A DNA stretch of 50,000 nt from Tubulanus polymorphus. Its lineage: Eukaryota > Animalia > Nemertea. Of this stretch, positions 1-37,903 are shown one piece after another. The position numbers and the translations under genes were made by a program. The notes under the pieces were generated by a model that searched no databases, was not told where the DNA came from, and worked only from the letters and a program-made list of their open reading frames with translations. The first letter of the stretch is position 1; the number at the start of each line of letters is the position of its first letter. The DNA lies in assembly GCF_964204645.1 (NCBI RefSeq), contig NW_027437482.1, forward strand, positions 1 to 50,000. Reading direction: 5' to 3'.

Positions 1-774
1 ATTGATACTCTGATTGGTTCCCCTAACCTATACCTCTAAACCTAACCCCGACCAGTGCCAGGAAAGCACGGAGATAGAGGGAAACCGAGAGCAATCGTCG
101 GTCCGCCCAGGTAGCTCAATCGGTAGAGCAGTCGTCCGGCAAACGAAAGGTCCGGTGTTCGAGTCCCGGTCTAGGTGGTGGATTGCTTTTCGGTATCCCT
201 AACTCTAATACCTTCCGGCAGGTGGAGTTAGCCGGCTTTCCCGCTGCCAGTGTCACAGTGGGTTCTGAAAAGATATCAGTTAATTACTCTCGATTAATTG
301 TGGTGGGTTAATCTGAAGAACACAAAAACATTAATTGATACTCTGATTGGTTCCCCTAACCTATACCTCTAAACCTAACCCCGACCAGTGCCAGGAAAGC
401 ACGGAGATAGAGGTGAAACCGAGAGCAATCGTCGGTCCGCCCAGGTAGCTCAATCGGTAGAGCAGTCGTCCGGCAAACGAAAGGTCCGGTGTTCGAGTCC
501 CCGGTCTAGGTGGTGGATTGCTTTTCGGTATCCCTAACTCTAATACCTTCCGGCAGGTGGAGTTAGCCGGCTTTCCCGCTGCCAGTGTCACAGTGGGGTT
601 CTGAAAAGATATCAGTTAATTACTCTCGATTAATTGTGGTGGGTTAATCTGAAGAACACAAAAACATTAATTGATACTCTGATTGGTTCCCCTAACCTAT
701 ACCTCTAAACCTAACCCCGACCAGTGCCAGGAAAGCACGGAGATAGAGGTGAAACCGAGAGCAATCGTCGGTCC

Positions 775-847
775 GCCCAGGTAGCTCAATCGGTAGAGCA
801 GTCGTCCGGCAAACGAAAGGTCCGGTGTTCGAGTCCCGGTCTAGGTG
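775..847 (+). tRNA. tRNA-like head of the 335-bp unit (degenerate, anticodon GGC/Ala-like); representative of 26 copies
   Basis: GCCCAGG-TA-GCTC-AATCGGTA-GAGC-A-GTCGT-CCGGCAA-ACGAA-AGGT-CCGGTG-TTCGAGT-CCCGG-TCTAGGT-G forms a cloverleaf with an A box (TAGCTCAATCGG) and a B box (GTTCGAGTCC). It has C at position 33, mismatches in the acceptor and anticodon stems and a bulged T stem, so it is probably not a translational tRNA. Confidence 0.8.
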
Positions 848-3800
848 GTGGATTGCTTTTCGGTATCCCTAACTCTAATACCTTCCGGCAGGTGGAGTTA
901 GCCGGCTTTCCCGCTGCCAGTGTCACAGTGGGGTTCTGAAAAGATATCAGTTAATTACTCTCGATTAATTGTGGTGGGTTAATCTGAAGAACACAAAAAC
1001 ATTAATTGATACTCTGATTGGTTCCCCTAACCTATACCTCTAAACCTAACCCCGACCAGTGCCAGGAAAAGCACGGAGATAGAGGTGAAACCGAGAGCAA
1101 TCGTCGGTCCGCCCAGGTAGCTCAATCGGTAGAGCAGTCGTCCGGCAAACGAAAGGTCCGGTGTTCGAGTCCCGGTCTAGGTGGTGGATTGCTTTTCGGT
1201 ATCCCTAACTCTAATACCTTCCGGCAGGTGGAGTTAGCCGGCTTTCCCGCTGCCAGTGTCACAGTGGGGTTCTGAAAAGATATCAGTTAATTACTCTCGA
1301 TTAATTGTGGTGGGTTAATCTGAAGAACACAAAAACATTAATTGATACTCTGATTGGTTCCCCTAACCTATACCTCTAAACCTAACCCCGACCAGTGCCA
1401 GGAAAGCACGGAGATAGAGGTGAAACCGAGAGCAATCGTCGGTCCGCCCAGGTAGCTCAATCGGTAGAGCAGTCGTCCGGCAAACGAAAGGTCCGGTGTT
1501 CGAGTCCCGGTCTAGGTGGTGGATTGCTTTTCGGTATCCCTAACTCTAATACCTTCCGGCAGGTGGAGTTAGCCGGCTTTCCCGCTGCCAGTGTCACAGT
1601 GGGGTTCTGAAAAGATATCAGTTAATTACTCTCGATTAATTGTGGTGGGTTAATCTGAAGAACACAAAAACATTAATTGATACTCTGATTGGTTCCCCTA
1701 ACCTATACCTCTAAACCTAACCCCGACCAGTGCCAGGAAAGCACGGAGATAGAGGTGAAACCGAGAGCAATCGTCGGTCCGCCCAGGTAGCTCAATCGGT
1801 AGAGCAGTCGTCCGGCAAACGAAAGGTCCGGTGTTCGAGTCCCGGTCTAGGTGGTGGATTGCTTTTCGGTATCCCTAACTCTAATACCTTCCGGCAGGTG
1901 GAGTTAGCCGGCTTTCCCGCTGCCAGTGTCACAGTGGGGTTCTGAAAAGATATCAGTTAATTACTCTCGATTAATTGTGGTGGGTTAATCTGAAGAACAC
2001 AAAAACATTAATTGATACTCTGATTGGTTCCCCTAACCTATACCTCTAAACCTAACCCCGACCAGTGCCAGGAAAGCACGGAGATAGAGGTGAAACCGAG
2101 AGCAATCGTCGGTCCGCCCAGGTAGCTCAATCGGTAGAGCAGTCGTCCGGCAAACGAAAGGTCCGGTGTTCGAGTCCCGGTCTAGGTGGTGGATTGCTTT
2201 TCGGTATCCCTAACTCTAATACCTTCCGGCAGGTGGAGTTAGCCGGCTTTCCCGCTGCCAGTGTCACAGTGGGGTTCTGAAAAGATATCAGTTAATTACT
2301 CTCGATTAATTGTGGTGGGTTAATCTGAAGAACACAAAAACATTAATTGATACTCTGATTGGTTCCCCTAACCTATACCTCTAAACCTAACCCCGACCAG
2401 TGCCAGGAAAGCACGGAGATAGAGGTGAAACCGAGAGCAATCGTCGGTCCGCCCAGGTAGCTCAATCGGTAGAGCAGTCGTCCGGCAAACGAAAGGTCCG
2501 GTGTTCGAGTCCCGGTCTAGGTGGTGGATTGCTTTTCGGTATCCCTAACTCTAATACCTTCCGGCAGGTGGAGTTAGCCGGCTTTCCCGCTGCCAGTGTC
2601 ACAGTGGGGTTCTGAAAAGATATCAGTTAATTACTCTCGATTAATTGTGGTGGGTTAATCTGAAGAACACAAAAACATTAATTGATACTCTGATTGGTTC
2701 CCCTAACCTATACCTCTAAACCTAACCCCGACCAGTGCCAGGAAAGCACGGAGATAGAGGTGAAACCGAGAGCAATCGTCGGTCCGCCCAGGTAGCTCAA
2801 TCGGTAGAGCAGTCGTCCGGCAAACGAAAGGTCCGGTGTTCGAGTCCCGGTCTAGGTGGTGGATTGCTTTTCGGTATCCCTAACTCTAATACCTTCCGGC
2901 AGGTGGAGTTAGCCGGCTTTCCCGCTGCCAGTGTCACAGTGGGGTTCTGAAAAGATATCAGTTAATTACTCTCGATTAATTGTGGTGGGTTAATCTGAAG
3001 AACACAAAAACATTAATTGATACTCTGATTGGTTCCCCTAACCTATACCTCTAAACCTAACCCCGACCAGTGCCAGGAAAGCACGGAGATAGAGGTGAAA
3101 CCGAGAGCAATCGTCGGTCCGCCCAGGTAGCTCAATCGGTAGAGCAGTCGTCCGGCAAACGAAAGGTCCGGTGTTCGAGTCCCGGTCTAGGTGGTGGATT
3201 GCTTTTCGGTATCCCTAACTCTAATACCTTCCGGCAGGTGGAGTTAGCCGGCTTTCCCGCTGCCAGTGTCACAGTGGGGTTCTGAAAAGATATCAGTTAA
3301 TTACTCTCGATTAATTGTGGTGGGTTAATCTGAAGAACACAAAAACATTAATTGATACTCTGATTGGTTCCCCTAACCTATACCTCTAAACCTAACCCCG
3401 ACCAGTGCCAGGAAAGCACGGAGATAGAGGTGAAACCGAGAGCAATCGTCGGTCCGCCCAGGTAGCTCAATCGGTAGAGCAGTCGTCCGGCAAACGAAAG
3501 GTCCGGTGTTCGAGTCCCGGTCTAGGTGGTGGATTGCTTTTCGGTATCCCTAACTCTAATACCTTCCGGCAGGTGGAGTTAGCCGGCTTTCCCGCTGCCA
3601 GTGTCACAGTGGGGTTCTGAAAAGATATCAGTTAATTACTCTCGATTAATTGTGGTGGGTTAATCTGAAGAACACAAAAACATTAATTGATACTCTGATT
3701 GGTTCCCCTAACCTATACCTCTAAACCTAACCCCGACCAGTGCCAGGAAAGCACGGAGATAGAGGTGAAACCGAGAGCAATCGTCGGTCCGCCCAGGTAG

Positions 3801-6800
3801 CTCAATCGGTAGAGCAGTCGTCCGGCAAACGAAAGGTCCGGTGTTCGAGTCCCGGTCTAGGTGGTGGATTGCTTTTCGGTATCCCTAACTCTAATACCTT
3901 CCGGCAGGTGGAGTTAGCCGGCTTTCCCGCTGCCAGTGTCACAGTGGGGTTCTGAAAAGATATCAGTTAATTACTCTCGATTAATTGTGGTGGGTTAATC
4001 TGAAGAACACAAAACATTAATTGATACTCTGATTGGTTCCCCTAACCTATACCTCTAAACCTAACCCCGACCAGTGCCAGGAAAGCACGGAGATAGAGGT
4101 GAAACCGAGAGCAATCGTCGGTCCGCCCAGGTAGCTCAATCGGTAGAGCAGTCGTCCGGCAAACGAAAGGTCCGGTGTTCGAGTCCCGGTCTAGGTGGTG
4201 GATTGCTTTTCGGTATCCCTAACTCTAATACCTTCCGGCAGGTGGAGTTAGCCGGCTTTCCCGCTGCCAGTGTCACAGTGGGGTTCTGAAAAGATATCAG
4301 TTAATTACTCTCGATTAATTGTGGTGGGTTAATCTGAAGAACACAAAAACATTAATTGATACTCTGATTGGTTCCCCTAACCTATACCTCTAAACCTAAC
4401 CCCGACCAGTGCCAGGAAAGCACGGAGATAGAGGTGAAACCGAGAGCAATCGTCGGTCCGCCCAGGTAGCTCAATCGGTAGAGCAGTCGTCCGGCAAACG
4501 AAAGGTCCGGTGTTCGAGTCCCGGTCTAGGTGGTGGATTGCTTTTCGGTATCCCTAACTCTAATACCTTCCGGCAGGTGGAGTTAGCCGGCTTTCCCGCT
4601 GCCAGTGTCACAGTGGGGTTCTGAAAAGATATCAGTTAATTACTCTCGATTAATTGTGGTGGGTTAATCTGAAGAACACAAAAACATTAATTGATACTCT
4701 GATTGGTTCCCCTAACCTATACCTCTAAACCTAACCCCGACCAGTGCCAGGAAAGCACGGAGATAGAGGTGAAACCGAGAGCAATCGTCGGTCCGCCCAG
4801 GTAGCTCAATCGGTAGAGCAGTCGTCCGGCAAACGAAAGGTCCGGTGTTCGAGTCCCGGTCTAGGTGGTGGATTGCTTTTCGGTATCCCTAACTCTAATA
4901 CCTTCCGGCAGGTGGAGTTAGCCGGCTTTCCCGCTGCCAGTGTCACAGTGGGGTTCTGAAAAGATATCAGTTAATTACTCTCGATTAATTGTGGTGGGTT
5001 AATCTGAAGAACACAAAAACATTAATTGATACTCTGATTGGTTCCCCTAACCTATACCTCTAAACCTAACCCCGACCAGTGCCAGGAAAGCACGGAGATA
5101 GAGGTGAAACCGAGAGCAATCGTCGGTCCGCCCAGGTAGCTCAATCGGTAGAGCAGTCGTCCGGCAAACGAAAGGTCCGGTGTTCGAGTCCCGGTCTAGG
5201 TGGTGGATTGCTTTTCGGTATCCCTAACTCTAATACCTTCCGGCAGGTGGAGTTAGCCGGCTTTCCCGCTGCCAGTGTCACAGTGGGGTTCTGAAAAGAT
5301 ATCAGTTAATTACTCTCGATTAATTGTGGTGGGTTAATCTGAAGAACACAAAAACATTAATTGATACTCTGATTGGTTCCCCTAACCTATACCTCTAAAC
5401 CTAACCCCGACCAGTGCCAGGAAAGCACGGAGATAGAGGTGAAACCGAGAGCAATCGTCGGTCCGCCCAGGTAGCTCAATCGGTAGAGCAGTCGTCCGGC
5501 AAACGAAAGGTCCGGTGTTCGAGTCCCGGTCTAGGTGGTGGATTGCTTTTCGGTATCCCTAACTCTAATACCTTCCGGCAGGTGGAGTTAGCCGGCTTTC
5601 CCGCTGCCAGTGTCACAGTGGGGTTCTGAAAAGATATCAGTTAATTACTCTCGATTAATTGTGGTGGGTTAATCTGAAGAACACAAAAACATTAATTGAT
5701 ACTCTGATTGGTTCCCCTAACCTATACCTCTAAACCTAACCCCGACCAGTGCCAGGAAAGCACGGAGATAGAGGTGAAACCGAGAGCAATCGTCGGTCCG
5801 CCCAGGTAGCTCAATCGGTAGAGCAGTCGTCCGGCAAACGAAAGGTCCGGTGTTCGAGTCCCGGTCTAGGTGGTGGATTGCTTTTCGGTATCCCTAACTC
5901 TAATACCTTCCGGCAGGTGGAGTTAGCCGGCTTTCCCGCTGCCAGTGTCACAGTGGGGTTCTGAAAAGATATCAGTTAATTACTCTCGATTAATTGTGGT
6001 GGGTTAATCTGAAGAACACAAAAACATTAATTGATACTCTGATTGGTTCCCCTAACCTATACCTCTAAACCTAACCCCGACCAGTGCCAGGAAAGCACGG
6101 AGATAGAGGTGAAACCGAGAGCAATCGTCGGTCCGCCCAGGTAGCTCAATCGGTAGAGCAGTCGTCCGGCAAACGAAAGGTCCGGTGTTCGAGTCCCGGT
6201 CTAGGTGGTGGATTGCTTTTCGGTATCCCTAACTCTAATACCTTCCGGCAGGTGGAGTTAGCCGGCTTTCCCGCTGCCAGTGTCACAGTGGGGTTCTGAA
6301 AAGATATCAGTTAATTACTCTCGATTAATTGTGGTGGGTTAATCTGAAGAACACAAAAACATTAATTGATACTCTGATTGGTTCCCCTAACCTATACCTC
6401 TAAACCTAACCCCGACCAGTGCCAGGAAAGCACGGAGATAGAGGTGAAACCGAGAGCAATCGTCGGTCCGCCCAGGTAGCTCAATCGGTAGAGCAGTCGT
6501 CCGGCAAACGAAAGGTCCGGTGTTCGAGTCCCGGTCTAGGTGGTGGATTGCTTTTCGGTATCCCTAACTCTAATACCTTCCGGCAGGTGGAGTTAGCCGG
6601 CTTTCCCGCTGCCAGTGTCACAGTGGGGTTCTGAAAAGATATCAGTTAATTACTCTCGATTAATTGTGGTGGGTTAATCTGAAGAACACAAAAACATTAA
6701 TTGATACTCTGATTGGTTCCCCTAACCTATACCTCTAAACCTAACCCCGACCAGTGCCAGGAAAGCACGGAGATAGAGGTGAAACCGAGAGCAATCGTCG

Positions 6801-8609
6801 GTCCGCCCAGGTAGCTCAATCGGTAGAGCAGTCGTCCGGCAAACGAAAGGTCCGGTGTTCGAGTCCCGGTCTAGGTGGTGGATTGCTTTTCGGTATCCCT
6901 AACTCTAATACCTTCCGGCAGGTGGAGTTAGCCGGCTTTCCCGCTGCCAGTGTCACAGTGGGGTTCTGAAAAGATATCAGTTAATTACTCTCGATTAATT
7001 GTGGTGGGTTAATCTGAAGAACACAAAAACATTAATTGATACTCTGATTGGTTCCCCTAACCTATACCTCTAAACCTAACCCCGACCAGTGCCAGGAAAG
7101 CACGGAGATAGAGGTGAAACCGAGAGCAATCGTCGGTCCGCCCAGGTAGCTCAATCGGTAGAGCAGTCGTCCGGCAAACGAAAGGTCCGGTGTTCGAGTC
7201 CCGGTCTAGGTGGTGGATTGCTTTTCGGTATCCCTAACTCTAATACCTTCCGGCAGGTGGAGTTAGCCGGCTTTCCCGCTGCCAGTGTCACAGTGGGGTT
7301 CTGAAAAGATATCAGTTAATTACTCTCGATTAATTGTGGTGGGTTAATCTGAAGAACACAAAAACATTAATTGATACTCTGATTGGTTCCCCTAACCTAT
7401 ACCTCTAAACCTAACCCCGACCAGTGCCAGGAAAGCACGGAGATAGAGGTGAAACCGAGAGCAATCGTCGGTCCGCCCAGGTAGCTCAATCGGTAGAGCA
7501 GTCGTCCGGCAAACGAAAGGTCCGGTGTTCGAGTCCCGGTCTAGGTGGTGGATTGCTTTTCGGTATCCCTAACTCTAATACCTTCCGGCAGGTGGAGTTA
7601 GCCGGCTTTCCCGCTGCCAGTGTCACAGTGGGGTTCTGAAAAGATATCAGTTAATTACTCTCGATTAATTGTGGTGGGTTAATCTGAAGAACACAAAAAC
7701 ATTAATTGATACTCTGATTGGTTCCCCTAACCTATACCTCTAAACCTAACCCCGACCAGTGCCAGGAAAGCACGGAGATAGAGGTGAAACCGAGAGCAAT
7801 CGTCGGTCCGCCCAGGTAGCTCAATCGGTAGAGCAGTCGTCCGGCAAACGAAAGGTCCGGTGTTCGAGTCCCGGTCTAGGTGGTGGATTGCTTTTCGGTA
7901 TCCCTAACTCTAATACCTTCCGGCAGGTGGAGTTAGCCGGCTTTCCCGCTGCCAGTGTCACAGTGGGGTTCTGAAAAGATATCAGTTAATTACTCTCGAT
8001 TAATTGTGGTGGGTTAATCTGAAGAACACAAAAACATTAATTGATACTCTGATTGGTTCCCCTAACCTATACCTCTAAACCTAACCCCGACCAGTGCCAG
8101 GAAAGCACGGAGATAGAGGTGAAACCGAGAGCAATCGTCGGTCCGCCCAGGTAGCTCAATCGGTAGAGCAGTCGTCCGGCAAACGAAAGGTCCGGTGTTC
8201 GAGTCCCGGTCTAGGTGGTGGATTGCTTTTCGGTATCCCTAACTCTAATACCTTCCGGCAGGTGGAGTTAGCCGGCTTTCCCGCTGCCAGTGTCACAGTG
8301 GGGTTCTGAAAAGATATCAGTTAATTACTCTCGATTAATTGTGGTGGGTTAATCTGAAGAACACAAAAACATTAATTGATACTCTGATTGGTTCCCCTAA
8401 CCTATACCTCTAAACCTAACCCCGACCAGTGCCAGGAAAGCACGGAGATAGAGGTGAAACCGAGAGCAATCGTCGGTCCGCCCAGGTAGCTCAATCGGTA
8501 GAGCAGTCGTCCGGCAAACGAAAGGTCCGGTGTTCGAGTCCCGGTCTAGGTGGTGGATTGCTTTTCGGTATCCCTAACTCTAATACCTTCCGGCAGGTGG
8601 AGTTAGCCG

Positions 8610-8776
8610 GCTTTCCCGCTGCCAGTGTCACAGTGGGGTTCTGAAAAGATATCAGTTAATTACTCTCGATTAATTGTGGTGGGTTAATCTGAAGAACACA
8701 AAAACATTAATTGATACTCTGATTGGTTCCCCTAACCTATACCTCTAAACCTAACCCCGACCAGTGCCAGGAAAGC
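8610..8776 (+). ncRNA. Structured 3' RNA domain of the 335-bp unit, homologous to the PLE 3' UTR domain (representative copy)
   Basis: Closing helix GCTTTCC/GGAAAGC, hairpin CGCTG..CAGTG, a GGGG..CCCC stem with inner stems, and the telomere-like strand CCCTAACCTATACCTCTAAACCTAACCC. Collinear with 12617-12717. Confidence 0.7.
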
Positions 8777-8817
8777 ACGGAGATAGAGGTGAAACCGAGA
8801 GCAATCGTCGGTCCGCG

Positions 8818-10119
8818 GCGGCTTGCACCGAAGCAGTAACGGTGCAGCTGCACGCTGCCGCGGACGTCTGGATGGAGACAGTTTCGAAAGAGCTGACCAT
8901 CCATTACGCTGCCACATTTGTTCAGCTAATGGGTGATCCTCTGCCGGACTGTCTATCAGCACAGGATGTCGCCCTGACATGGGCCCGGAGGAATTTCGGC
9001 TCCCGTCTAAGCCCCGGAACGATCCGGCTTTTCAACATCGCGCTGGATTTGCGGTCGAAATTCCGCGGTCAGGCTCTGTCTGACAAACTCAGAAATGTCC
9101 TATCTAACCCACCTTCTTCCCCTTCTCATTTCAGGTCACACCACCAGGAGGCACCCACGGAACCGAAGATTCGTCCGCCGCCGAGACCGAGCCGGAAGAT
9201 TCGAAAGCCCGCGACGCCGAGGACGCCTGCACCAACCGCAGCCGCGCCCGCCGCGCCCACAGCGCCTCCTTCTTTTTCTGATTCCAGGTCACCGAGAAGC
9301 TACGCGGATGTCACCAGGACGCCACCAACCAGAATGGCGCCACCACCGAGAAGTCCGATGCCGACGCCGCCGCCGCCACCAAGAAGTACGACGCCACCGA
9401 GAAGTCCGACGCCGCCGCCTCGAAACCCGACGCCGCCGCCGCCGCAGAGAACGCCGACCGCACCAACCAGCAGTCCGACGCCGTCTCTCTCTTCTTCTCT
9501 TTCCAGCTCTCCGTCTCATTACAGGTCACCAGGGCGCCTACTGCCAGCGCGAAGTCCGACGCCAACACCGAGACCGATGGCGCCCCAGGAAGTTCGCCGT
9601 CATCCGAATACGGGTCGGAAGAAACAGGATTGGAGTCTGCCACCAACCCGGCGACCCATTCTGGTGATTGGTGACTCAAATCTGAGTAACATCACATCAA
9701 GCCGCCGTCCGGATGACGTCCAGATCGAGAGCTTCCCCGGCTGCAAGATAGCTCATCTCGCCGACCTGATCGATGCTGTACCGGAGCGCCGAGATCGCCC
9801 GGATACGGTGATCATCAGCGTCGGAATCAACAACCGCGACAACAACTTCGAAGCGACCGCCAAGAAGACCACACAGCGCCTGATCAACGCCGCAGTCAAG
9901 AAGTATCAGCACTCGTTCGTCCACTTCGTTCAACTGAACACGACCCGCGAACACCAGCAGTTCGCCCGGAAGTTCAACGAATTCCTCGAGATTCACGACG
10001 ACGTCACCGCGATACCACCCATCGATGATCGACGCTTCAGAGTTGTTGGAGACGGGATCCACTGGAACCGTGGTACAGCTAACACCCTGCTGGACCACTG
10101 GCTCAGTGGTTTAAACTAA
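8818..10119 (+). CDS. PLE ORF1, 5'-truncated (Pro-rich region + SGNH/GDSL esterase)
   Basis: Matches the 519-aa ORF1 from AACTEAV onward. The track's N-terminus (8764-8817) comes from the satellite. Confidence 0.8.
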   Translation, partial: AACTEAVTVQLHAAADVWMETVSKELTIHYAATFVQLMGDPLPDCLSAQDVALTWARRNFGSRLSPGTIRLFNIALDLRSKFRGQALSDKLRNVLSNPPSSPSHFRSHHQEAPTEPKIRPPPRPSRKIRKPATPRTPAPTAAAPAAPTAPPSFSDSRSPRSYADVTRTPPTRMAPPPRSPMPTPPPPPRSTTPPRSPTPPPRNPTPPPPQRTPTAPTSSPTPSLSSSLSSSPSHYRSPGRLLPARSPTPTPRPMAPQEVRRHPNTGRKKQDWSLPPTRRPILVIGDSNLSNITSSRRPDDVQIESFPGCKIAHLADLIDAVPERRDRPDTVIISVGINNRDNNFEATAKKTTQRLINAAVKKYQHSFVHFVQLNTTREHQQFARKFNEFLEIHDDVTAIPPIDDRRFRVVGDGIHWNRGTANTLLDHWLSGLN

Positions 10120-10146
10120 GTATTAGTGAGACCAACGGGTCCACTA
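10110..10146 (+). promoter_or_regulatory. -1 programmed ribosomal frameshift signal (U UUA AAC + 7-nt spacer + hairpin); also at 16452, 20661, 24811, 28961, 33111, 39457
   Basis: The slippery heptamer is in the correct phase immediately before the ORF1 TAA. The hairpin is TAGTG(A)GACC-AACG-GGTC-CACTA. The -1 frame is open with no stop into ORF2. Confidence 0.8.
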
Positions 10147-10274
10147 TTGGTGAGTTAAATCAACCGGAATTAACCAATGCTTCTCTGATTTCTTCCATTT
10201 CCAGGTCCGACGAACACGAAGAACCGGCACCAAACCAAGCGCGACGCGATCCGGTCACCGCTCTCGGGAGCCCG

Positions 10275-12575
10275 GTGGTCAACCTCACACGTTCACTCCG
10301 CCTAAGTCCGGCGCAACATCAGCTACTCCGAAAGGGCCTCACTTATTGCCCGACTCCAAAAATCGGTTCTGATGCCGCCGCGACCGAGCGCACCAAGGGA
10401 GTGTGCCGATTCAACCGGCTAGTGAAACTCGACCATCACTTCCGAGACAAACCGGACCGCGAGGCTCCGCGTTTCCGTCTGCCCAGCAGTTGGGCTCCGG
10501 ATGAAATAGAACCAGTAATCGCCGGGTTCTGCAACGACGCGCACGAATTGGCTCAACAAACCAGGGATACGCGTCGCGTAAATGATAACCTCACTAAACA
10601 GGAACGCGAAGCCCTCCAGCAGCTGCGTGACAACACTAATATTGTCATCAAAGCCGCCGATAAGGGTTCCGCTACGGTTATCATGGACCGCGACGACTAC
10701 GTCCACGAAGCCATGCGCCAACTAGCCGATCTCGAGTATTATCAGCCGCTGCAGCAACCGATCTTCGAACAGACCGGGGAAGAAATTCGCGAAATCATCG
10801 AAAATATGGCTCGACGAAAAATCATCCCGCTAAAAACCGCCGAATATCTATTACCGCCCGATAATCCGAAACAGAGGCAGTTCTATCTGCTTCCCAAAAT
10901 CCATAAAGAACGCGAGAAGTGGACGGTACCCGATCGCGTACCGCCGGGGAGACCGATCGTCTCCGACTGCGGCTCCGAAACCTACGAAATTTCGGAATGG
11001 ATCGACTACTATTTGCAGCCGATCGCCCGCGGTCACCCGTCGTACGTCAAAGATACCAACCACTTTCTAGATATTTTGGCCGGTAAACAATTTAGCGCCG
11101 ATGCGTTACTCGTCACCATGGACATCGATTCGCTCTACACCAACATCCCCCACGAAGAGGGTATCGCCAGCATCCGACAAGCTCTCCGAGATAACCCGAA
11201 CCCGGGACGCCCGGATGCCGAGCTGCTGAAACTACTCGAAATCAGCCTGAAGAAAAATGACTTTAACTTTAACGAAAACACATATTTACAGGTAAAAGGT
11301 ACCGCAATGGGTAAGCGTTTTGCTCCTTCTTATGCCAATATCTTTGTAGCCGAATGGGAAAAAGAAGGTCTGTCCAGAAGCGAACTCCAACCATCGCTAT
11401 ACGCTCGGTTCATCGACGACATCTACATAGTTTGGGAACACGGCCGCGAAACGTTGATGCAATTCATCGACGTCCTACAAACAGTGAGCCGATCCATCAA
11501 ACTCAAGTTCGAAATCAGCGACACCAGCGTCAACTTCCTGGACGTAACCACTTTCAAAGGCCCGCGATTCGAGACAAGTGGCACAGTAGACACCAAAGTC
11601 TACTTCAAACCAACCGATTCGCATCAATTACTACATCGATCCTCGTTTCACCCTAAACACACATTTTCCGGTATAGTTAAAAGTCAAATTCTCCGGTTCC
11701 GGCGCATCTGCAATAACGATTCGGACTTACACGCAGCGTCCGGAACCGTCCTTAAAGTACTCAGAGGTCGTGGCTACAAAGACCGCGAACTGCGACACAT
11801 CAAAAGCCAAGCTCTACGGCACCACGCCGAACGAGATCTACGAGAACAACAACGGGCCGACGAACCGCCGAAAAAGCGTTTACCGCTTATCTTACCTCAC
11901 TCCGAAGCCAACCGAACCCTAGCCCGTAACATCCGAACCAGATTTACGGAACTGGCTACGGCCACCGGCCGGTCTGACGAGGTAACCACGGTCACCGCCT
12001 ACACCAAGCACAAGAGTCTCAAAGATCTCCTAACTTCGTCGCAGCTCAAACCCACGGAGCCACCCCCTCCCCGAGTCCCCTCTTCACCGCATCGTAACAG
12101 AAATACTTCCGTTGTTTCCAATTCTTCTATTTCCAGGTCTACTCAAAGAACTCCGTCAACCCGACGTCGAGGCACCGAGAAATGCAGAACACCGAGATGT
12201 CGTACGTGTCCACTCGTCCGAGAAACAACCGTTTGCCGCAGCCACAACAAAATGCACGCGATCCGCAGCACAATTAATTGCGCGACCCGTGAAATTGTAT
12301 ACTGCATCGAATGCACCAAGTGCAACATGCTGTACGTCGGCCAAACCGGAATGTCTCTACGAGAACGCGTCACTCATCACGTCTCACGCATCAGAACGAA
12401 GAATTCGACTCCAGTCTCGGACCACTTCAACCAAGTCGACCACACCCGCGAACACTTTCGGGTGTACGGTCTCCAACACCTACCAGGCTCCACGAGACCG
12501 ATCCGCGAAGCAGCCGAACAAGACTGGATACGACGACTCGACACGAACACGCCCCGAGGCATGAACGTCCCGTAG
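10275..12575 (+). CDS. PLE ORF2: reverse transcriptase + GIY-YIG endonuclease (copy 1)
   Basis: PLE RT motifs KAADKG, FYLLPKIHK, GRPIVS, DIDSLYTNIP, GTAMG, RFIDDI, FLD and YFKPT. Linker CRTPRCRTC. Endonuclease motifs IVYCIECTKC..YVGQT, R, H, E and GMN. There is no ATG start, and the frame is open upstream to the slippery site at 10110. Confidence 0.95.
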   Translation: MVNLTRSLRLSPAQHQLLRKGLTYCPTPKIGSDAAATERTKGVCRFNRLVKLDHHFRDKPDREAPRFRLPSSWAPDEIEPVIAGFCNDAHELAQQTRDTRRVNDNLTKQEREALQQLRDNTNIVIKAADKGSATVIMDRDDYVHEAMRQLADLEYYQPLQQPIFEQTGEEIREIIENMARRKIIPLKTAEYLLPPDNPKQRQFYLLPKIHKEREKWTVPDRVPPGRPIVSDCGSETYEISEWIDYYLQPIARGHPSYVKDTNHFLDILAGKQFSADALLVTMDIDSLYTNIPHEEGIASIRQALRDNPNPGRPDAELLKLLEISLKKNDFNFNENTYLQVKGTAMGKRFAPSYANIFVAEWEKEGLSRSELQPSLYARFIDDIYIVWEHGRETLMQFIDVLQTVSRSIKLKFEISDTSVNFLDVTTFKGPRFETSGTVDTKVYFKPTDSHQLLHRSSFHPKHTFSGIVKSQILRFRRICNNDSDLHAASGTVLKVLRGRGYKDRELRHIKSQALRHHAERDLREQQRADEPPKKRLPLILPHSEANRTLARNIRTRFTELATATGRSDEVTTVTAYTKHKSLKDLLTSSQLKPTEPPPPRVPSSPHRNRNTSVVSNSSISRSTQRTPSTRRRGTEKCRTPRCRTCPLVRETTVCRSHNKMHAIRSTINCATREIVYCIECTKCNMLYVGQTGMSLRERVTHHVSRIRTKNSTPVSDHFNQVDHTREHFRVYGLQHLPGSTRPIREAAEQDWIRRLDTNTPRGMNVP

Positions 12576-12616
12576 ACCGCCTCACTACAACAATTAACTC
12601 TCACTACTTTTTTACA

Positions 12617-12717
12617 GGGATAACCCGCTGCCCGTGCACTAGTGGGGTCTCCAAACCTTCGGTTTGGTCCCCTAACCTCTATCTCTAAACCTAACCTTAG
12701 CCCGTGCCAGGTTTCCC
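12617..12717 (+). ncRNA. Structured PLE 3' RNA domain containing the telomere-complementary priming motif (complete only here and at 35618-35718)
   Basis: Closing helix GGGA(T)AACC/GGTTTCCC, hairpin CGCTG..TAGTG, hairpin CCAAAC-CTTCG-GTTTGG within GGG/CCC, then CCCTAACCTCTATCTCTAAACCTAACC. Five copies end at this motif and continue into (TAACCC)n. Confidence 0.7.
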
Positions 12718-14900
12718 TCGTAAATTATCTTAACTGATTAATTATTAATCATCAATCTATTTGCAGAATCATCCTCCGTCGCCTGAAGCAGAAACCCGCT
12801 CAGAGACAGAGTACAAAACAAACTCCAAGATCACAAGCTCCACAGGAATCATCAACCTTTTATCTTTTAATTAGTTCTCTCTGCTTTACTTTGAAAACTC
12901 AATCGAAATTCAGTAAGTAAGAAGACAGACCAAATATCAGAAACAGTTAGAAAAATAAACAAAAGCGCGATATCGGGAACCGAACCCTAACCGCTAGTAC
13001 AGACTGGTTGCCTGTCCCAGGACGATAGAAACCGGTAACCAGTCCACCGCTATTATCTATTTCGAAAATATGCGTCAGCACTGAGATTATATCATAGAAA
13101 CACACGAAAAGTGTTAATTAATCTATTATAAATTTAGAAAGAAAGGGAATCTAGAATAGGTAAGAATATACTCAATTACTAAAAACGGCGCGCCTGATCG
13201 GGATTCGAACCCGCGGCACCCGAATTAAGCTCCGGAGAATACTCGGGAACCGTACCCGCCGCTCCGAAATTAACCGCTAGTACTGACGGGTTGCCGGTGC
13301 CCCGCGTTAGATACCGGTAACCGGTCCACCGCTCTTATTTATTTTGAAAATATGCGTCGGCACTAAGATTATATCGTAGAAACATCTGAAAAGTACTATT
13401 GTATCCGTCAAAGATTCGGAATTAAAAGGAATCCAGAATAGGTAAAAAACATTTGAAAAGAACTATTCAATTACTAAACGGCGCCTGGTCGGGACTCGAA
13501 CCCGCGGCACCCTAATTAACCTCCGTTTAATCTATAACGTTCGGTCGGGGACCTAACCCGCTACGTCCTAATTAACTATTATCGTACCCACGCGCCAACT
13601 CTTGGAGCATACTCTATATAGATCCGGGTGTCAAGTTTCAAATTTCTCTAAAACAGACAGTTTATTTTCGGATAACAATTCTAATGAGATCGCTCAAAAG
13701 TATTAGTAGCTATATTCAAAAACCGCACTATAGGTTGTAGAAGTATAAGAAGTTTATAGGATAAATAATAGTCCACGGACATCAATCACTGTTTACAAGT
13801 CACTCATAATTAGTGACCGATCGGCCACCTGCGCCTCTTGACTAATTATCCGACTCAATTCTATACAAAATCGCAGTTACGACGCCTTCAAACTCATCAG
13901 TTTTTTTCAAAGAACACAGCCCAATATTCCCGATTCAAAAAGAGTTTTATATCACGTATATATTTCAACCTTCGGATTAAAGAAGAGATCATAGTGTTTT
14001 TGAACCACTCAAACTACGCAAGCTTAAACCGATTTACTGAATACCCGCGCTCCGGTCTGAATATATTTGTCACATGTTCAAGTTCACATAGCTTTACTCG
14101 ATCCTAATAACTCTAAATAAGCGTAGTTTATCTAATAGAATTATATTTAAGAACTTAGAATTAAAACAGACGTATTAGTAAGACATTTCTATCAAAACTC
14201 GCCACCCATAATTAGGGCTAATTAACCACCCGCGCTCACTCAGTAATTTAGATCTTACGGGTTATAACTTCCTACTAAATCGCCGACGCCGCGCTGTCTA
14301 ATTCATCCAATTTTCGGTAGAATACCGCGTAGATATTTCAAAATCCGCTCTTAAAAGCTTTAGAATACGGAGAAAACTTGATTAACTAAGAACCGGATTT
14401 CACCATTTACGACTATTTAGTATACACGCGTATATCGGAATACGCCTCGGCCGCGCACCGCTAATTAACGCGTCTAAACTAATTAGGAATTAAGCAATTT
14501 TGAAACTGAACTCGGACATATTTCGAACATTCCGGTTCACGTATATTAATAATACATATTCTAGATTTCTCTTTATAGAAAACACTTTGAGTATTTATTA
14601 GGTTATATCGAAATAAACTTTTCAATTCTATATTAGACACGCCGTTCTTTAGATCTTTAGAACTATACATCAAAGCAAACTATTCAACAGCTAGATCAAG
14701 GGCCATAATTAGTGCTGTTTTCTAGTCACTCTGGATCAAAGGCATAATTAGTCAGACCCCTAGTTTGTCTATTAGCTTGATCACAGAAGTACAATTAGTC
14801 TAGATCACAAGGTCTCATATGGTCACTTAACTTCTAACTCGAATACTGTTCACTTGTTGCGCGCTGCGTGTATAAAAACCCGTGTCTAATCCTAGTTCAG
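12697..14900 (+). mobile_element. 2.2-kb AT-rich non-coding spacer of the long (6.34-kb) element unit: 3' extension plus promoter of the next copy
   Basis: A near-identical copy lies at 35698-37902. AATAAA at 12954-12959, two internal modules of about 270-280 bp, and a TATA box at the 3' end. Confidence 0.85.
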
Positions 14901-14901
14901 C
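14871..14901 (+). promoter_or_regulatory. Pol II core promoter (TATAAAA + Inr-like TCAG)
   Basis: TATAAAA at 14871-14877 and TCAG at 14897-14900. Telomere-joined copies start at the corresponding CATG about 30 nt downstream of the TATA box. Confidence 0.7.
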
Positions 14902-16461
14902 ATGATTCCTGCACTGACACTGACGAAGGCAACCTCGCCGAAATATCTGTCAATGGAGCGATCTACTCGAAAGAAGAAACGACCACCAGCTGAGAAGACC
15001 AGCAAGGGCGGAGGACGCCCTGAGCGACACCAGCAACCCGGGATGTCGCCGAAAAATTACTATAGAGCTCTTCAAGTGGCGCACCACCTTGCCCAGTTGA
15101 GCTCTGGTCCGAAAGCGATTCGGAGGAAGAAGGACCATCTGAAGATGTTCCTGCGGCCGGCGGCTTGCACCGAAGCAGTAACGGTGCAGCTGCACGCTGC
15201 CGCGGACGTCTGGATGGAGACAGTTTCGAAAGAGCGGACCATCCATTACGCTGCCACATTTGTTCAGCTAATGGGTGATCCTCTGCCGGACTGTCTATCA
15301 GCACAGGATGTCGCCCTGACATGGGCCCGGAGGAATTTCGGCTCCCGTCTAAGCCCCGGAACGATCCGGCTTTTCAACATCGCGCTGGATTTGCGGTCGA
15401 AATTCCGCGGTCAGGCTCTGTCTGACAAACTCAGAAATGTCCTATCTAACCCACCTTCTTCCCCTTCTCATTTCAGGTCACACCACCAGGAGGCACCCAC
15501 GGAACCGAAGATTCGTCCGCCGCCGAGACCGAGCCGGAAGATTCGAAAGCCCGCGACGCCGAGGACGCCTGCACCAACCGCAGCCGCGCCCGCCGCGCCC
15601 ACAGCGCCTCCTTCTTTTTCTGATTCCAGGTCACCGAGAAGCTACGCGGATGTCACCAGGACGCCACCAACCAGAATGGCGCCACCACCGAGAAGTCCGA
15701 TGCCGACGCCGCCGCCGCCACCAAGAAGTACGACGCCACCGAGAAGTCCGACGCCGCCGCCTCGAAACCCGACGCCGCCGCCGCCGCAGAGAACGCCGAC
15801 CGCACCAACCAGCAGTCCGACGCCGTCTCTCTCTTCTTCTCTTTCCAGCTCTCCGTCTCATTACAGGTCACCAGGGCGCCTACTGCCAGCGCGAAGTCCG
15901 ACGCCAACACCGAGACCGATGGCGCCCCAGGAAGTTCGCCGTCATCCGAATACGGGTCGGAAGAAACAGGATTGGAGTCTGCCACCAACCCGGCGACCCA
16001 TTCTGGTGATTGGTGACTCAAATCTGAGTAACATCACATCAAGCCGCCGTCCGGATGACGTCCAGATCGAGAGCTTCCCCGGCTGCAAGATAGCTCATCT
16101 CGCCGACCTGATCGATGCTGTACCGGAGCGCCGAGATCGCCCGGATACGGTGATCATCAGCGTCGGAATCAACAACCGCGACAACAACTTCGAAGCGACC
16201 GCCAAGAAGACCACACAGCGCCTGATCAACGCCGCAGTCAAGAAGTATCAGCACTCGTTCGTCCACTTCGTTCAACTGAACACGACCCGCGAACACCAGC
16301 AGTTCGCCCGGAAGTTCAACGAATTCCTCGAGATTCACGACGACGTCACCGCGATACCACCCATCGATGATCGACGCTTCAGAGTTGTTGGAGACGGGAT
16401 CCACTGGAACCGTGGTACAGCTAACACCCTGCTGGACCACTGGCTCAGTGGTTTAAACTAA
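14902..16461 (+). CDS. PLE ORF1: basic N-terminus, Pro/Ser/Thr-rich linker, SGNH/GDSL esterase
   Basis: SGNH blocks ILVIGDSNL (I), SFPG (II), VIISVGINN (III) and DGIH (V), plus RSPTPPP repeats. The real start may be the second ATG (14953, MERS), downstream of the ribozyme cleavage site. Confidence 0.88.
   Translation: MIPALTLTKATSPKYLSMERSTRKKKRPPAEKTSKGGGRPERHQQPGMSPKNYYRALQVAHHLAQLSSGPKAIRRKKDHLKMFLRPAACTEAVTVQLHAAADVWMETVSKERTIHYAATFVQLMGDPLPDCLSAQDVALTWARRNFGSRLSPGTIRLFNIALDLRSKFRGQALSDKLRNVLSNPPSSPSHFRSHHQEAPTEPKIRPPPRPSRKIRKPATPRTPAPTAAAPAAPTAPPSFSDSRSPRSYADVTRTPPTRMAPPPRSPMPTPPPPPRSTTPPRSPTPPPRNPTPPPPQRTPTAPTSSPTPSLSSSLSSSPSHYRSPGRLLPARSPTPTPRPMAPQEVRRHPNTGRKKQDWSLPPTRRPILVIGDSNLSNITSSRRPDDVQIESFPGCKIAHLADLIDAVPERRDRPDTVIISVGINNRDNNFEATAKKTTQRLINAAVKKYQHSFVHFVQLNTTREHQQFARKFNEFLEIHDDVTAIPPIDDRRFRVVGDGIHWNRGTANTLLDHWLSGLN
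14915..14952 (+). ncRNA. Minimal type I hammerhead ribozyme
   Basis: Stem I TGACA/TGTCA, core CTGACGA, stem II GGC-AACCTC-GCC, GAAA, palindromic ATAT in place of stem III, predicted cleavage after C14947. Minimal hammerheads are typical of PLEs. Confidence 0.75.
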
Positions 16462-16616
16462 GTATTAGTGAGACCAACGGGTCCACTATTGGTGAGTTAA
16501 ATCAACCGGAATTAACCAATGCTTCTCTGATTTCTTCCATTTCCAGGTCCGACGAACACGAAGAACCGGCACCAAACCAAGCGCGACGCGATCCGGTCAC
16601 CGCTCTCGGGAGCCCG

Positions 16617-18917
16617 GTGGTCAACCTCACACGTTCACTCCGCCTAAGTCCGGCGCAACATCAGCTACTCCGAAAGGGCCTCACTTATTGCCCGACTCCA
16701 AAAATCGGTTCTGATGCCGCCGCGACCGAGCGCACCAAGGGAGTGTGCCGATTCAACCGGCTAGTGAAACTCGACCATCACTTCCGAGACAAACCGGACC
16801 GCGAGGCTCCGCGTTTCCGTCTGCCCAGCAGTTGGGCTCCGGATGAAATAGAACCAGTAATCGCCGGGTTCTGCAACGACGCGCACGAATTGGCTCAACA
16901 AACCAGGGATACGCGTCGCGTAAATGATAACCTCACTAAACAGGAACGCGAAGCCCTCCAGCAGCTGCGTGACAACACTAATATTGTCATCAAAGCCGCC
17001 GATAAGGGTTCCGCTACGGTTATCATGGACCGCGACGACTACGTCCACGAAGCCATGCGCCAACTAGCCGATCTCGAGTATTATCAGCCGCTGCAGCAAC
17101 CGATCTTCGAACAGACCGGGGAAGAAATTCGCGAAATCATCGAAAATATGGCTCGACGAAAAATCATCCCGCTAAAAACCGCCGAATATCTATTACCGCC
17201 CGATAATCCGAAACAGAGGCAGTTCTATCTGCTTCCCAAAATCCATAAAGAACGCGAGAAGTGGACGGTACCCGATCGCGTACCGCCGGGGAGACCGATC
17301 GTCTCCGACTGCGGCTCCGAAACCTACGAAATTTCGGAATGGATCGACTACTATTTGCAGCCGATCGCCCGCGGTCACCCGTCGTACGTCAAAGATACCA
17401 ACCACTTTCTAGATATTTTGGCCGGTAAACAATTTAGCGCCGATGCGTTACTCGTCACCATGGACATCGATTCGCTCTACACCAACATCCCCCACGAAGA
17501 GGGTATCGCCAGCATCCGACAAGCTCTCCGAGATAACCCGAACCCGGGACGCCCGGATGCCGAGCTGCTGAAACTACTCGAAATCAGCCTGAAGAAAAAT
17601 GACTTTAACTTTAACGAAAACACATATTTACAGGTAAAAGGTACCGCAATGGGTAAGCGTTTTGCTCCTTCTTATGCCAATATCTTTGTAGCCGAATGGG
17701 AAAAAGAAGGTCTGTCCAGAAGCGAACTCCAACCATCGCTATACGCTCGGTTCATCGACGACATCTACATAGTTTGGGAACACGGCCGCGAAACGTTGAT
17801 GCAATTCATCGACGTCCTACAAACAGTGAGCCGATCCATCAAACTCAAGTTCGAAATCAGCGACACCAGCGTCAACTTCCTGGACGTAACCACTTTCAAA
17901 GGCCCGCGATTCGAGACAAGTGGCACAGTAGACACCAAAGTCTACTTCAAACCAACCGATTCGCATCAATTACTACATCGATCCTCGTTTCACCCTAAAC
18001 ACACATTTTCCGGTATAGTTAAAAGTCAAATTCTCCGGTTCCGGCGCATCTGCAATAACGATTCGGACTTACACGCAGCGTCCGGAACCGTCCTTAAAGT
18101 ACTCAGAGGTCGTGGCTACAAAGACCGCGAACTGCGACACATCAAAAGCCAAGCTCTACGGCACCACGCCGAACGAGATCTACGAGAACAACAACGGGCC
18201 GACGAACCGCCGAAAAAGCGTTTACCGCTTATCTTACCTCACTCCGAAGCCAACCGAACCCTAGCCCGTAACATCCGAACCAGATTTACGGAACTGGCTA
18301 CGGCCACCGGCCGGTCTGACGAGGTAACCACGGTCACCGCCTACACCAAGCACAAGAGTCTCAAAGATCTCCTAACTTCGTCGCAGCTCAAACCCACGGA
18401 GCCACCCCCTCCCCGAGTCCCCTCTTCACCGCATCGTAACAGAAATACTTCCGTTGTTTCCAATTCTTCTATTTCCAGGTCTACTCAAAGAACTCCGTCA
18501 ACCCGACGTCGAGGCACCGAGAAATGCAGAACACCGAGATGTCGTACGTGTCCACTCGTCCGAGAAACAACCGTTTGCCGCAGCCACAACAAAATGCACG
18601 CGATCCGCAGCACAATTAATTGCGCGACCCGTGAAATTGTATACTGCATCGAATGCACCAAGTGCAACATGCTGTACGTCGGCCAAACCGGAATGTCTCT
18701 ACGAGAACGCGTCACTCATCACGTCTCACGCATCAGAACGAAGAATTCGACTCCAGTCTCGGACCACTTCAACCAAGTCGACCACACCCGCGAACACTTT
18801 CGGGTGTACGGTCTCCAACACCTACCAGGCTCCACGAGACCGATCCGCGAAGCAGCCGAACAAGACTGGATACGACGACTCGACACGAACACGCCCCGAG
18901 GCATGAACGTCCCGTAG
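16617..18917 (+). CDS. PLE ORF2: RT + GIY-YIG endonuclease (copy 2)
   Basis: Same motifs as 10275-12575. Confidence 0.95.
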   Translation: MVNLTRSLRLSPAQHQLLRKGLTYCPTPKIGSDAAATERTKGVCRFNRLVKLDHHFRDKPDREAPRFRLPSSWAPDEIEPVIAGFCNDAHELAQQTRDTRRVNDNLTKQEREALQQLRDNTNIVIKAADKGSATVIMDRDDYVHEAMRQLADLEYYQPLQQPIFEQTGEEIREIIENMARRKIIPLKTAEYLLPPDNPKQRQFYLLPKIHKEREKWTVPDRVPPGRPIVSDCGSETYEISEWIDYYLQPIARGHPSYVKDTNHFLDILAGKQFSADALLVTMDIDSLYTNIPHEEGIASIRQALRDNPNPGRPDAELLKLLEISLKKNDFNFNENTYLQVKGTAMGKRFAPSYANIFVAEWEKEGLSRSELQPSLYARFIDDIYIVWEHGRETLMQFIDVLQTVSRSIKLKFEISDTSVNFLDVTTFKGPRFETSGTVDTKVYFKPTDSHQLLHRSSFHPKHTFSGIVKSQILRFRRICNNDSDLHAASGTVLKVLRGRGYKDRELRHIKSQALRHHAERDLREQQRADEPPKKRLPLILPHSEANRTLARNIRTRFTELATATGRSDEVTTVTAYTKHKSLKDLLTSSQLKPTEPPPPRVPSSPHRNRNTSVVSNSSISRSTQRTPSTRRRGTEKCRTPRCRTCPLVRETTVCRSHNKMHAIRSTINCATREIVYCIECTKCNMLYVGQTGMSLRERVTHHVSRIRTKNSTPVSDHFNQVDHTREHFRVYGLQHLPGSTRPIREAAEQDWIRRLDTNTPRGMNVP

Positions 18918-19033
18918 ACCGCCTCACTACAACAATTAACTCTCACTACTTTTTTACAGGGATAACCCGCTGCCCGTGCACTAGTGGGGTCTCCAAACCT
19001 TCGGTTTGGTCCCCTAACCTCTATCTCTAAACC

Positions 19034-20670: not shown

Positions 20671-20825
20671 GTATTAGTGAGACCAACGGGTCCACTATTG
20701 GTGAGTTAAATCAACCGGAATTAACCAATGCTTCTCTGATTTCTTCCATTTCCAGGTCCGACGAACACGAAGAACCGGCACCAAACCAAGCGCGACGCGA
20801 TCCGGTCACCGCTCTCGGGAGCCCG

Positions 20826-37902: not shown

Positions 37903-37903
37903 C

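Follow-up and report, generated by a model that had tools for sequence, protein, structure and literature searches.

The window analysed here is a 50,000-bp stretch of the Tubulanus polymorphus genome (contig NW_027437482.1, positions 1 to 50,000 of the forward strand). On the plus strand it reads, from left to right, a tandem array of a 335-bp unit (1-8816), seven near-identical copies of a retroelement of approximately 4.15 kb (8817-42057), and unique low-GC DNA. Judged from its predicted proteins the retroelement is an endonuclease-bearing (EN+) Penelope-like element (PLE), called the partner element below. Each 335-bp unit carries a tRNA-like segment followed by a domain homologous to the 3′ untranslated region (UTR) of the PLE, and the comparisons reported here support a chimeric unit, made up of a tRNA-derived segment and the 3′ UTR domain of the PLE itself. 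The array and the parts of one representative unit are listed below, where P1 denotes the helix that closes the shared domain.

1..8816, plus strand: tandem array of the 335-bp unit, found with Tandem Repeats Finder (TRF); the window begins inside the array
8145..8217, plus strand: tRNA-like segment (Rfam RF00005), with A-box-like TAGCTCAATCGG and B-box-like GTGTTCGAGTCC
8227..8230, plus strand: TTTT run at unit positions 83-86, 10 nt past the tRNA-like end; candidate RNA polymerase III (Pol III) terminator
8240..8255, plus strand: first shared block, TAACTCTAATACCTT, with a CCCTAAC heptamer, from the gapped alignment
8275..8304, plus strand: P1 5′ strand GCTTTCC (8275-8281) and shared block A, CCCGCTGCCAGTGTCACAGTGGGGT (8280-8304), from BLASTN, alignment and pairing
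8305..8392, plus strand: long AT-rich hairpin in place of the 7-bp UUCG hairpin of the PLE; the GGGG/CCCC closure is common to both
8393..8441, plus strand: shared block B, TCCCCTAACCTATACCTCTAAACCTAACC..CCAGTGCCAGG (8393-8436; BLASTN E = 6e-8), and P1 3′ strand GGAAAGC (8435-8441)
8444..8464, plus strand: unit tail GGAGATAGAGGTGAAACCGAG, like an inverted partial PLE 3′ UTR (TCGGTTT..ACCTCTATCTC) and able to pair with block B

The tandem array and its tRNA-like segment

Across positions 1-8816, TRF gave a 335-bp period with 26.3 head-to-tail copies and 99% matches, so that at least 26 copies are present. When the units were compared one by one, 21 of the 25 complete ones were identical. Units differed by five single-nucleotide indels and no substitutions; the leading partial unit has one of the indels, complete units have the other four, and four of the five lie in homopolymer runs. 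The unit has a GC content of approximately 50% and no coding capacity.

The sequence-only reading of this DNA had placed a tRNA-like head with A and B boxes in each unit, and the head was recovered in a degenerate form. The Rfam tRNA model RF00005 matched all units over its full length (1-71) at 43 bits (40.5 bits in one unit), compared to a gathering score of 29, and the A and B boxes could be recognised directly in the sequence. ARAGORN called no tRNA in the units of the window. In the Rfam alignment the cloverleaf contains mismatches in the acceptor and anticodon stems, two of its pairs are non-standard, and position 33 is C rather than U; the minimum-free-energy fold of the tRNA-like part alone was not a cloverleaf. 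The stem mismatches and the C at position 33 indicate that the segment is tRNA-derived and not a working tRNA; together with the negative ARAGORN result and the non-cloverleaf fold, they led to the rejection of a functional tRNA gene.

Within the unit the TTTT run precedes the PLE-like domain and so lies between the head and the shared part. Such a run is the usual Pol III stop signal. In sequence, the tRNA-like part resembles a small Pol III gene that has a stop of its own and sits ahead of the PLE-like domain. A 5′ leader, AGCAATC, and a 3′ trailer, GATTGCT, are perfectly complementary over 7 bp in every unit (window 8130-8235), and their pairing would surround the tRNA-like part with a longer stem immediately ahead of the TTTT run.

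The domain common to the unit and the PLE 3′ UTR

The corresponding parts of the PLE 3′ UTR lie behind the first PLE copy.

12594..12717, plus strand: PLE 3′ UTR module in its long form, with P1 5′ strand GGGATAACC (12617-12625) and P1 3′ strand GGTTTCCC (12710-12717)
12624..12711, plus strand: inner parts of the same module, namely block A (12624-12648), the UUCG hairpin, block B (12668-12711) and CCTAACC (12690-12696)

Collinearity of the unit with the PLE 3′ UTR had been proposed from the letters alone and was borne out, with three blocks found in the same order. BLASTN of the unit against the PLE returned two collinear matches, 54 nt at 81% identity (E = 6e-8) and 26 nt at 88% identity (E = 0.44 when taken alone). 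A gapped local alignment of the unit and the PLE 3′ UTR scored 45, compared to 16.4 +/- 2.7 for shuffled sequences (z = 10.9), and added a third collinear block (TAACTCT..TAC..) that begins 19 nt past the ORF2 stop (ORF, open reading frame). The homology spans nearly the entire PLE 3′ UTR, from 19 nt after the ORF2 stop to CCAGG. This end point lies 15 nt past the 3′ end of retrotransposed PLE copies, indicating that the unit matches the long form of the 3′ UTR. The shared domain had been taken for the 3′ end of the unit, and this part of the proposal needs correction. When the tRNA-like part is placed first, 43 further nt follow CCAGG before the next tRNA-like part, and the retrotransposed 3′ end of the partner (CCTAACC) falls within the unit and not at its end. 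The shared blocks differ by approximately 12-19% between the unit and the local PLE; the hairpin has been replaced outright and all paired elements are retained. The likeness of the unit tail to an inverted partial PLE 3′ UTR is modestly supported (z about 3.7, with 2 of 1000 shuffles equal or better).

Pairing and comparison with relatives indicate that the shared part is a structured RNA domain conserved in this PLE lineage. In the PLE, P1 is formed by GGGAUAACC, immediately before block A, and GGUUUCCC, immediately after CCAGG. At the same two positions the unit can form the helix GCUUUCC/GGAAAGC, which retains two C-G pairs and has U-A where the following pairs of the PLE are A-U. Chance gave such a helix in 13-14 of 20000 shuffled flanks for each of the two, and the duplex energy was reached in 7-8 of 2000; in the PLE, P1 was also recovered by RNAfold (z = -2.4). 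The P1 pairs were counted by script, since the MAFFT alignment of the module misplaced a 90-nt insert. Inside P1 the order is CGCU-GCC(C/A)GUG, a hairpin closed by GGGG/CCCC, a single-stranded stretch ...CCUAACCU.UA.CUCUAAACCUAACC, and a second (G/A)CC(C/A)GUGCC. The hairpin has 7 bp and a UUCG loop in the PLE and is long and AT-rich in the unit. The single-stranded CCUAACC stretch, which is complementary to the telomere G-strand, is kept in both.

The same organisation was found in relatives of the partner element. A PLE from a different sample (L002, 61% protein identity) has the same blocks; its hairpin (GGGGAACC/GGUUCCCC) is of other sequence with the pairing retained, and its 3′ UTR continues into (CCCTAA)n. 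In a TARA metagenome relative (49% identity), two GCCAGUG motifs approximately 90 nt apart are closed by UUCCAA/UUGGAG, a pairing equalled in 42 of 2000 shuffles. In the more distant relative L015, P1 was not significant. P1 spans the end point of the retrotransposed copies and so would form only in a longer precursor RNA. We infer that 3′-end choice or priming may occur inside the domain, at CCUAACC.

The sequence-only reading had set the unit apart from PLE parasites that use hammerheads, and no hammerhead was found in it. At neither the gathering score nor permissive thresholds (E<=5-10) did Rfam detect a hammerhead or any other ribozyme in the unit, in the PLE 3′ UTR or in the spacer described below, and it gave no ribozyme in 12560-13000 or in 10 related loci. 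Hammerhead candidates picked by eye from CUGANGA/GAAA motifs (including CUGAAGA) have no helix II. The Rfam telomerase RNA models did not match the unit even at E<=10, nor did they match the PLE 3′ UTR, the spacer or the related loci, and a telomerase-RNA reading of the unit was rejected as the main view because there is no tandem 1.5-repeat template.

A search of metagenome contigs for the block-B DNA pattern returned only L010 and L011, which carry degenerate telomere repeats and no PLE. On the minus strand of L010, at about 100-200, ACCAGTGCCAGCAAAG and CCCGCTGG resemble ACCAGTGCCAGGAAAG and CCCGCTGCC of the unit; no PLE ORF is present there, and the resemblance may be chance.

The partner element and the array junction

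The remaining features of the window, from the junction to the last PLE copy, are as follows.

8816..8817, plus strand: array/PLE junction, with the unit cut 1-2 nt into the 5′ end of the tRNA-like part
8817..12703, plus strand: PLE copy 1, 5′-truncated; ORF2 at 10275-12575 (reverse transcriptase (RT) and GIY-YIG)
12704..14901, plus strand: first AT-rich spacer, 2.2 kb, following the long-form 3′ UTR
14902..35704, plus strand: PLE copies 2-6, head to tail, starting at 14902, 19111, 23261, 27411 and 31561, joined by CCTAACCCTAACCCTAACCC, with intact ORFs
19064..19110, plus strand: 47-nt PLE 3′-end fragment amid telomeric repeats, with five CCCTAA before it, 2.5 repeats of its own, and the next copy after it
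35705..37903, plus strand: second AT-rich spacer, 98.9% identical to the first
37904..42057, plus strand: PLE copy 7, the most proximal and most divergent, ending in CCTAACCCTAACCCTAACCC followed by unique low-GC DNA

The domains of ORF2 are an RT and a GIY-YIG nuclease, which identify the partner, as far as its translation can tell, as an EN+ PLE. Pfam placed GIY-YIG at residues 674-755 with E = 3e-4, just under the cutoff; the GIY/YIG motif, the CCHH-type cysteines and the CX4CX2C linker before the nuclease are all readable in the translation, and relatives of the partner carry PF01541. The best database match was a Tubulanus polymorphus NCBI protein (97% identity), and thousands of remoter relatives were found in marine metagenomes. 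ORF1 has 519 codons and is proline-rich, with a C-terminal GDSL/SGNH-like domain. The homologous ORF1s of relatives pass the Pfam GDSL threshold, and a search with ORF1 found no T. polymorphus paralogues. ORF2 is intact in all seven copies and ORF1 in six, and the copies are 99.5-99.9% identical. With these intact ORFs, domains and near-identical copies, the partner element looks active.

In copies 2-6 the 3′ UTR leads into CCTAACCCTAACCCTAACCC and the next copy starts precisely at ATGATTCC, giving a 4150-bp period. Telomeric-repeat junctions were found at 19029-19110, 23241-23260, 27391-27410, 31541-31560 and 42037-42057. The precise succession of 3′ end, (CCCTAA)2.5 and 5′ end at these PLE junctions has the look of serial end addition or template jumping, and the 47-nt fragment behind copy 2 looks like an aborted addition between two full ones. 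Within a T. polymorphus chromosome of 32 Mb, a 5′-truncated copy ends in ...TCTAAACCTAAACCC, after which host DNA follows. This copy identifies CCTAACC(C) as the retrotransposed 3′ end and indicates that the element also inserts away from telomeres. The partner had been called a telomeric PLE in the sequence-only reading. The 3′ ends joined by (CCCTAA)n agree with that name, whereas the GIY-YIG domain and the insertion inside a chromosome do not; because the partner is EN+, the name does not apply in the sense used for Athena elements.

The copies differ from one another at 22 substituted positions and by one 3-nt indel, in a graded manner. Hardly any differences separate copies 1 and 2, and private changes are most numerous in the proximal copy 7, a gradient that fits older copies lying proximal. 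Copies 3-5 have a common U-to-C change that breaks one pair in the 3′ UTR hairpin. By the substitution pattern, the dimer formed by copy 1, the spacer and copy 2 is the youngest PLE unit.

Copies 1 and 6 run past CCTAACC into TTAGCCCGTGCCAGGTTTCCC and then into the 2.2-kb AT-rich spacer, which could belong to the element and bear a promoter, or could be a separate sequence. TATAAAA (14871-14877) precedes by 31 bp the ATG that opens the short copies. The spacer contains many TAATTA-type motifs, an internal duplication of approximately 250 bp, and degenerate repeats TCGGGAYTCGAACCCGCGGCACCC that resemble a minus-strand tRNA T-arm. A tRNA reading of the minus-strand GGTTCGAATCCC-like pieces of the spacer was supported neither by Rfam (E<=5) nor by ARAGORN. 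Two TARA relatives (L006:2838-4520 and L015:5197-7526) have tandem copies with 1.7-2.3 kb of non-coding DNA between the ORF2 stop and the next ORF1, a layout that parallels the long form plus spacer of the window.

In the L013/L014 family (54% identity) the 3′ UTR also runs into telomeric repeats (L013:5090-5290 and L014:4500-4578; compare L002:2940-3036). The relative at L012:5043-5299 (56% identity over the RT) ends in (CTA)n, and its 3′ UTR sequence CCCTGTGCCAG is close to the GCCNGTGCC motif. The simple repeat behind the 3′ end thus varies between families of this clade, and is telomeric in three of those seen. Past the telomeric repeats of L013 (5600-6401), a segment of approximately 300 bp occurs twice, with G-strand-like GGGTTGGGTTAGGGG, and could be another PLE-adjacent repeat, from another organism. 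In the window, a 37-bp tandem repeat (4.9 copies, 96% matches) lies at 42141-42321, where the low-GC region begins, approximately 80 bp to the proximal side of the last PLE copy.

The array has the same orientation as the PLE copies, lies distal to them and is fused directly to copy 1, as the sequence-only reading had described. The last unit ends ...GGTCCG(C) at 8816 and is followed by PLE position 256/257, with 1 nt of ambiguous overlap, and copy 1 lacks its first 256 bp. CCCTAA is on the sense strand, 3′ of every copy, so the chromosome end should lie to the left, beyond the array; telomere-primed elements are known to have this polarity. The sequence supports a polarity of the array as expected for reverse-transcribed additions at a chromosome end. 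The junction is near a predicted RNase P cut, which would be the 3′ end of a unit-length RNA released from a multimer; noticed after the fact, this proximity is a coincidence of about 1 in 100 and comes from a single junction.

Origin of the array and its significance

The explanation that we tentatively put foremost, while granting that it falls somewhat short of being probable, is that the unit is a non-autonomous tandem element that depends on the PLE, like a retrozyme but with no hammerhead. It would consist of a tRNA-gene-like piece, with trailer and TTTT run, joined to a complete PLE 3′ UTR domain, and the borrowed parts would be the P1 closing helix, the two GCC(A/C)GUG motifs, the GGGG/CCCC hairpin and the single-stranded CCUAACC. 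The array would be transcribed into multimers, the borrowed domain would be recognised by the PLE RT, and multimeric, circular or serially template-jumped unit RNA would be copied onto a chromosome end or nick, leaving head-to-tail units with the polarity of the PLE copies. The tRNA-like part may provide Pol III promoter boxes, or a site at which host RNase P cuts multimers to unit length, and recombination may later have enlarged or homogenised the array. This mechanism is the one proposed for the spread of animal non-LTR retrozymes (LTR, long terminal repeat), minus the hammerhead. The homology, P1, the conservation of the module, the apparent activity of the PLE, its junctions, the polarity of the array, the absence of substitutions and the retrozyme precedent were all counted in favour of an RT-dependent origin.

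Several observations weigh against RT-made units. No telomeric repeats, A-tails or target duplications occur between adjacent units, whereas telomeric repeats are found at every PLE-PLE junction of the telomeric type. Only one proximal array end is visible, and it does not fall at CCTAACC, where the PLE copies end; it had been predicted that copies of the unit would end there, and the end seen lies 1-2 nt into the tRNA-like 5′ end. The TTTT run argues, on sequence grounds, against Pol III transcripts reaching the PLE-like domain, and the folding stability of the whole unit was no better than that of shuffled sequences (z = 0.13). A second locus with the unit was not found when the translated array ORF was compared to 5.8 billion proteins (0 matches). 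The flipped P1 pairs could predate the unit, having been inherited from another autonomous PLE subfamily, and as sequence evidence they would then speak for the importance of the structure to PLEs and not for selection on the unit itself. The absence of substitutions over 8.7 kb fits an array that arose in one or few recent events, and the uniformity fits equally well a single recent burst of rolling-circle or serial template-jump reverse transcription, a route put forward for retrozymes and PLE tandems, or DNA-level amplification with homogenisation; gene conversion, unequal exchange or assembly collapse would also yield perfect homogeneity. Finally, the dimer of copies 1 and 2 could be a later endonuclease-mediated insertion beside an older array, with loss of the intervening DNA, in which case the junction is uninformative on how the array grew.

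Much of this evidence would suit an ordinary subtelomeric satellite, which is a substantial possibility, rated below the retrozyme-like element. One chimeric insertion or rearrangement, combining a PLE 3′ UTR fragment with a tRNA gene or pseudogene, would have been amplified and made uniform as DNA, through unequal sister-chromatid exchange, replication slippage or break-induced replication. The PLE-like domain would be a passive relic, and the junction with copy 1 a scar of end-joining or of PLE insertion. The exact 335-bp period without substitutions or signatures of separate insertions, a junction overlap of only 1 nt away from a PLE-type 3′ end, the TTTT run inside the unit, the unremarkable fold of the whole unit and the failure of both searches for other copies (translated ORF against proteins and block-B pattern against metagenome contigs) are all in keeping with it, and retrotransposon-derived repeats often seed satellites, which are often subtelomeric (PMC7004042; PMC5615363). 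Against it, the unit has a complete PLE 3′ domain, from the start of the UTR to just past P1, and not a random fragment, and its polarity and distal position match RT-made terminal arrays. A divergence of approximately 12-19% and a new hairpin with the pairing nevertheless kept need constraint or a second PLE subfamily as donor, and the closest PLE-derived tandem repeats, the retrozymes, are regarded as retroelements.

A classical tRNA-derived short interspersed element (SINE), which is how the sequence-only reading had seen the unit, is improbable. Pol III would transcribe the unit from the A and B boxes, the RNA would end in the PLE-like tail, and units would be added singly, with CCUAACC priming on telomeric overhangs. 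The tRNA-derived head with recognisable boxes, the domain common to the unit and an autonomous partner, and a length within the usual SINE range are the parts of that proposal that stand. The TTTT run 10 nt past the head should, however, halt Pol III before the tail, the shared domain, in a unit read from the tRNA-like part, is followed by 43 nt and so is not terminal, the proximal array end is not at CCTAACC, and no (CCCTAA)n separates the units although all PLE copies made in that way have it. Dispersed copies were not seen in the metagenome scan or in the ORF-based protein search, neither of which covered the T. polymorphus genome. Least probable of all, and very unlikely, is an array with a host function (tRNA-like genes or a telomerase-RNA-like template) or an artefact of assembly collapse or expansion. 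Each unit does look like a small Pol III gene, with a tRNA-like part and TTTT, CCUAACC lies inside a helix-closed domain as templates do in telomerase RNA, and the units are perfectly identical. In contrast, the tRNA-like part is degenerate (negative in ARAGORN, with stem mismatches and no preference for the cloverleaf), a tandem 1.5-repeat template is missing and the Rfam telomerase RNA models were negative at E<=10. The differences between units, single-nucleotide indels with four of the five in homopolymers, are typical of long-read data from a real array, and the array joins unique PLE sequence cleanly.

A joint reading of the retrozyme-like element and the telomeric setting is unlikely, if less so than the SINE. 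RNase P would cut multimers at the tRNA-like 5′ ends, the internal CCUAACC would prime the PLE RT, and 335-bp units would extend or heal chromosome ends, with an EN+ partner that targets telomeric repeats. The domain closed by P1 would offer CCUAACC to a telomeric 3′ end as telomerase aligns its template, and the partner would belong to an EN+ PLE lineage, represented by at least three families from marine animals, that has telomeric repeats as its target microsatellite.

Animal non-LTR retrozymes are tandem repeats of approximately 150-450 bp that carry type I hammerheads, derive from PLE pseudo-LTRs (pLTRs) and are regarded as PLE-dependent non-autonomous retroelements (PMC7229834; bioRxiv 10.64898/2026.07.22.740005). 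The unit resembles them in its head-to-tail arrangement of approximately 300-bp units (up to dozens), its origin from terminal non-coding PLE sequence, its lack of coding sequence and its presumed dependence on a PLE RT. It differs in having no detectable hammerhead or other ribozyme and a tRNA-like segment instead, in a GC content of approximately 50%, not below 45%, and in the position of the array at the distal edge of a PLE array joined by telomeric repeats. tRNA-derived SINEs share the 3′ tail of a partner long interspersed element (LINE) in 'stringent' LINE/SINE pairs. The unit is like these in its tRNA-derived part with A and B boxes, its structured domain from an autonomous partner and its size in the SINE range; it is unlike them in that the partner is a PLE and not a LINE, TTTT lies between head and tail, the borrowed domain is not terminal in a unit read from the tRNA-like part, and the unit was seen only as a uniform tandem array.

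As of 2021, EN+ PLEs were known as dispersed elements and only endonuclease-deficient (EN-) PLEs were known at telomeres (PMC8557442). The partner resembles the EN-deficient telomeric Athena, Coprina and Terminons (PMC8557442; PMC5408684) in its 3′ reverse-complement telomeric repeats and in arrays with 3′ ends toward the centromere, and some Athena and Terminon families in its GDSL-like accessory ORF. In contrast to them, the partner keeps an apparently intact C-terminal GIY-YIG with the CX4CX2C linker, also inserts inside chromosomes, and has no hammerhead beside the telomeric stretch. To our knowledge, no tRNA-headed satellite partner has been described for Athena, Coprina or Terminons. An EN+ PLE in arrays joined by (CCCTAA)n, with two more marine families likewise, is noteworthy in that it does not fit the EN+/EN- split.

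Telomeres built from or targeted by retrotransposons are found in Drosophila (HeT-A/TART/TAHRE) and Bombyx (TRAS/SART), and Chironomus has complex terminal repeats of approximately 340-350 bp. The retrotransposon cases have been reviewed (PMC4700185). The arrangement in the window is like them in its uniformly oriented head-to-tail elements, some of which are 5′-truncated, and like Chironomus in having a complex repeat of approximately 340 bp as the most distal sequence. It is unlike both in that the elements are PLEs with canonical (TTAGGG)n between them, from which telomerase is probably active. A literature search found no paper on a tRNA-linked PLE derivative or on an EN+ PLE array joined by telomeric repeats, an absence that is not proof.

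Among retroelement enzymes, PLE reverse transcriptases stand closest to telomerase (PMC8557442). They belong to its sister group, and how PLEs choose their RNA and primer is poorly understood because there is no in vitro system. The compact module found here (P1, two GCCNGUG motifs, a variable hairpin and a telomere-complementary stretch) offers a minimal substrate for binding and priming assays, because it is common to an apparently active PLE and a 335-nt non-coding partner. If the array was made by the RT, PLE parasites need not carry hammerheads, PLE-type retroelements could, like LINE-type ones, recruit tRNA-like elements, and endonuclease-bearing PLEs could build telomere-adjacent arrays. 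Should the joint reading be true, the accepted split between dispersed EN+ and telomeric EN- PLEs would be blurred. If the array is only a satellite, it would clearly exemplify a subtelomeric satellite that originated as a chimera of a retroelement and a tRNA.

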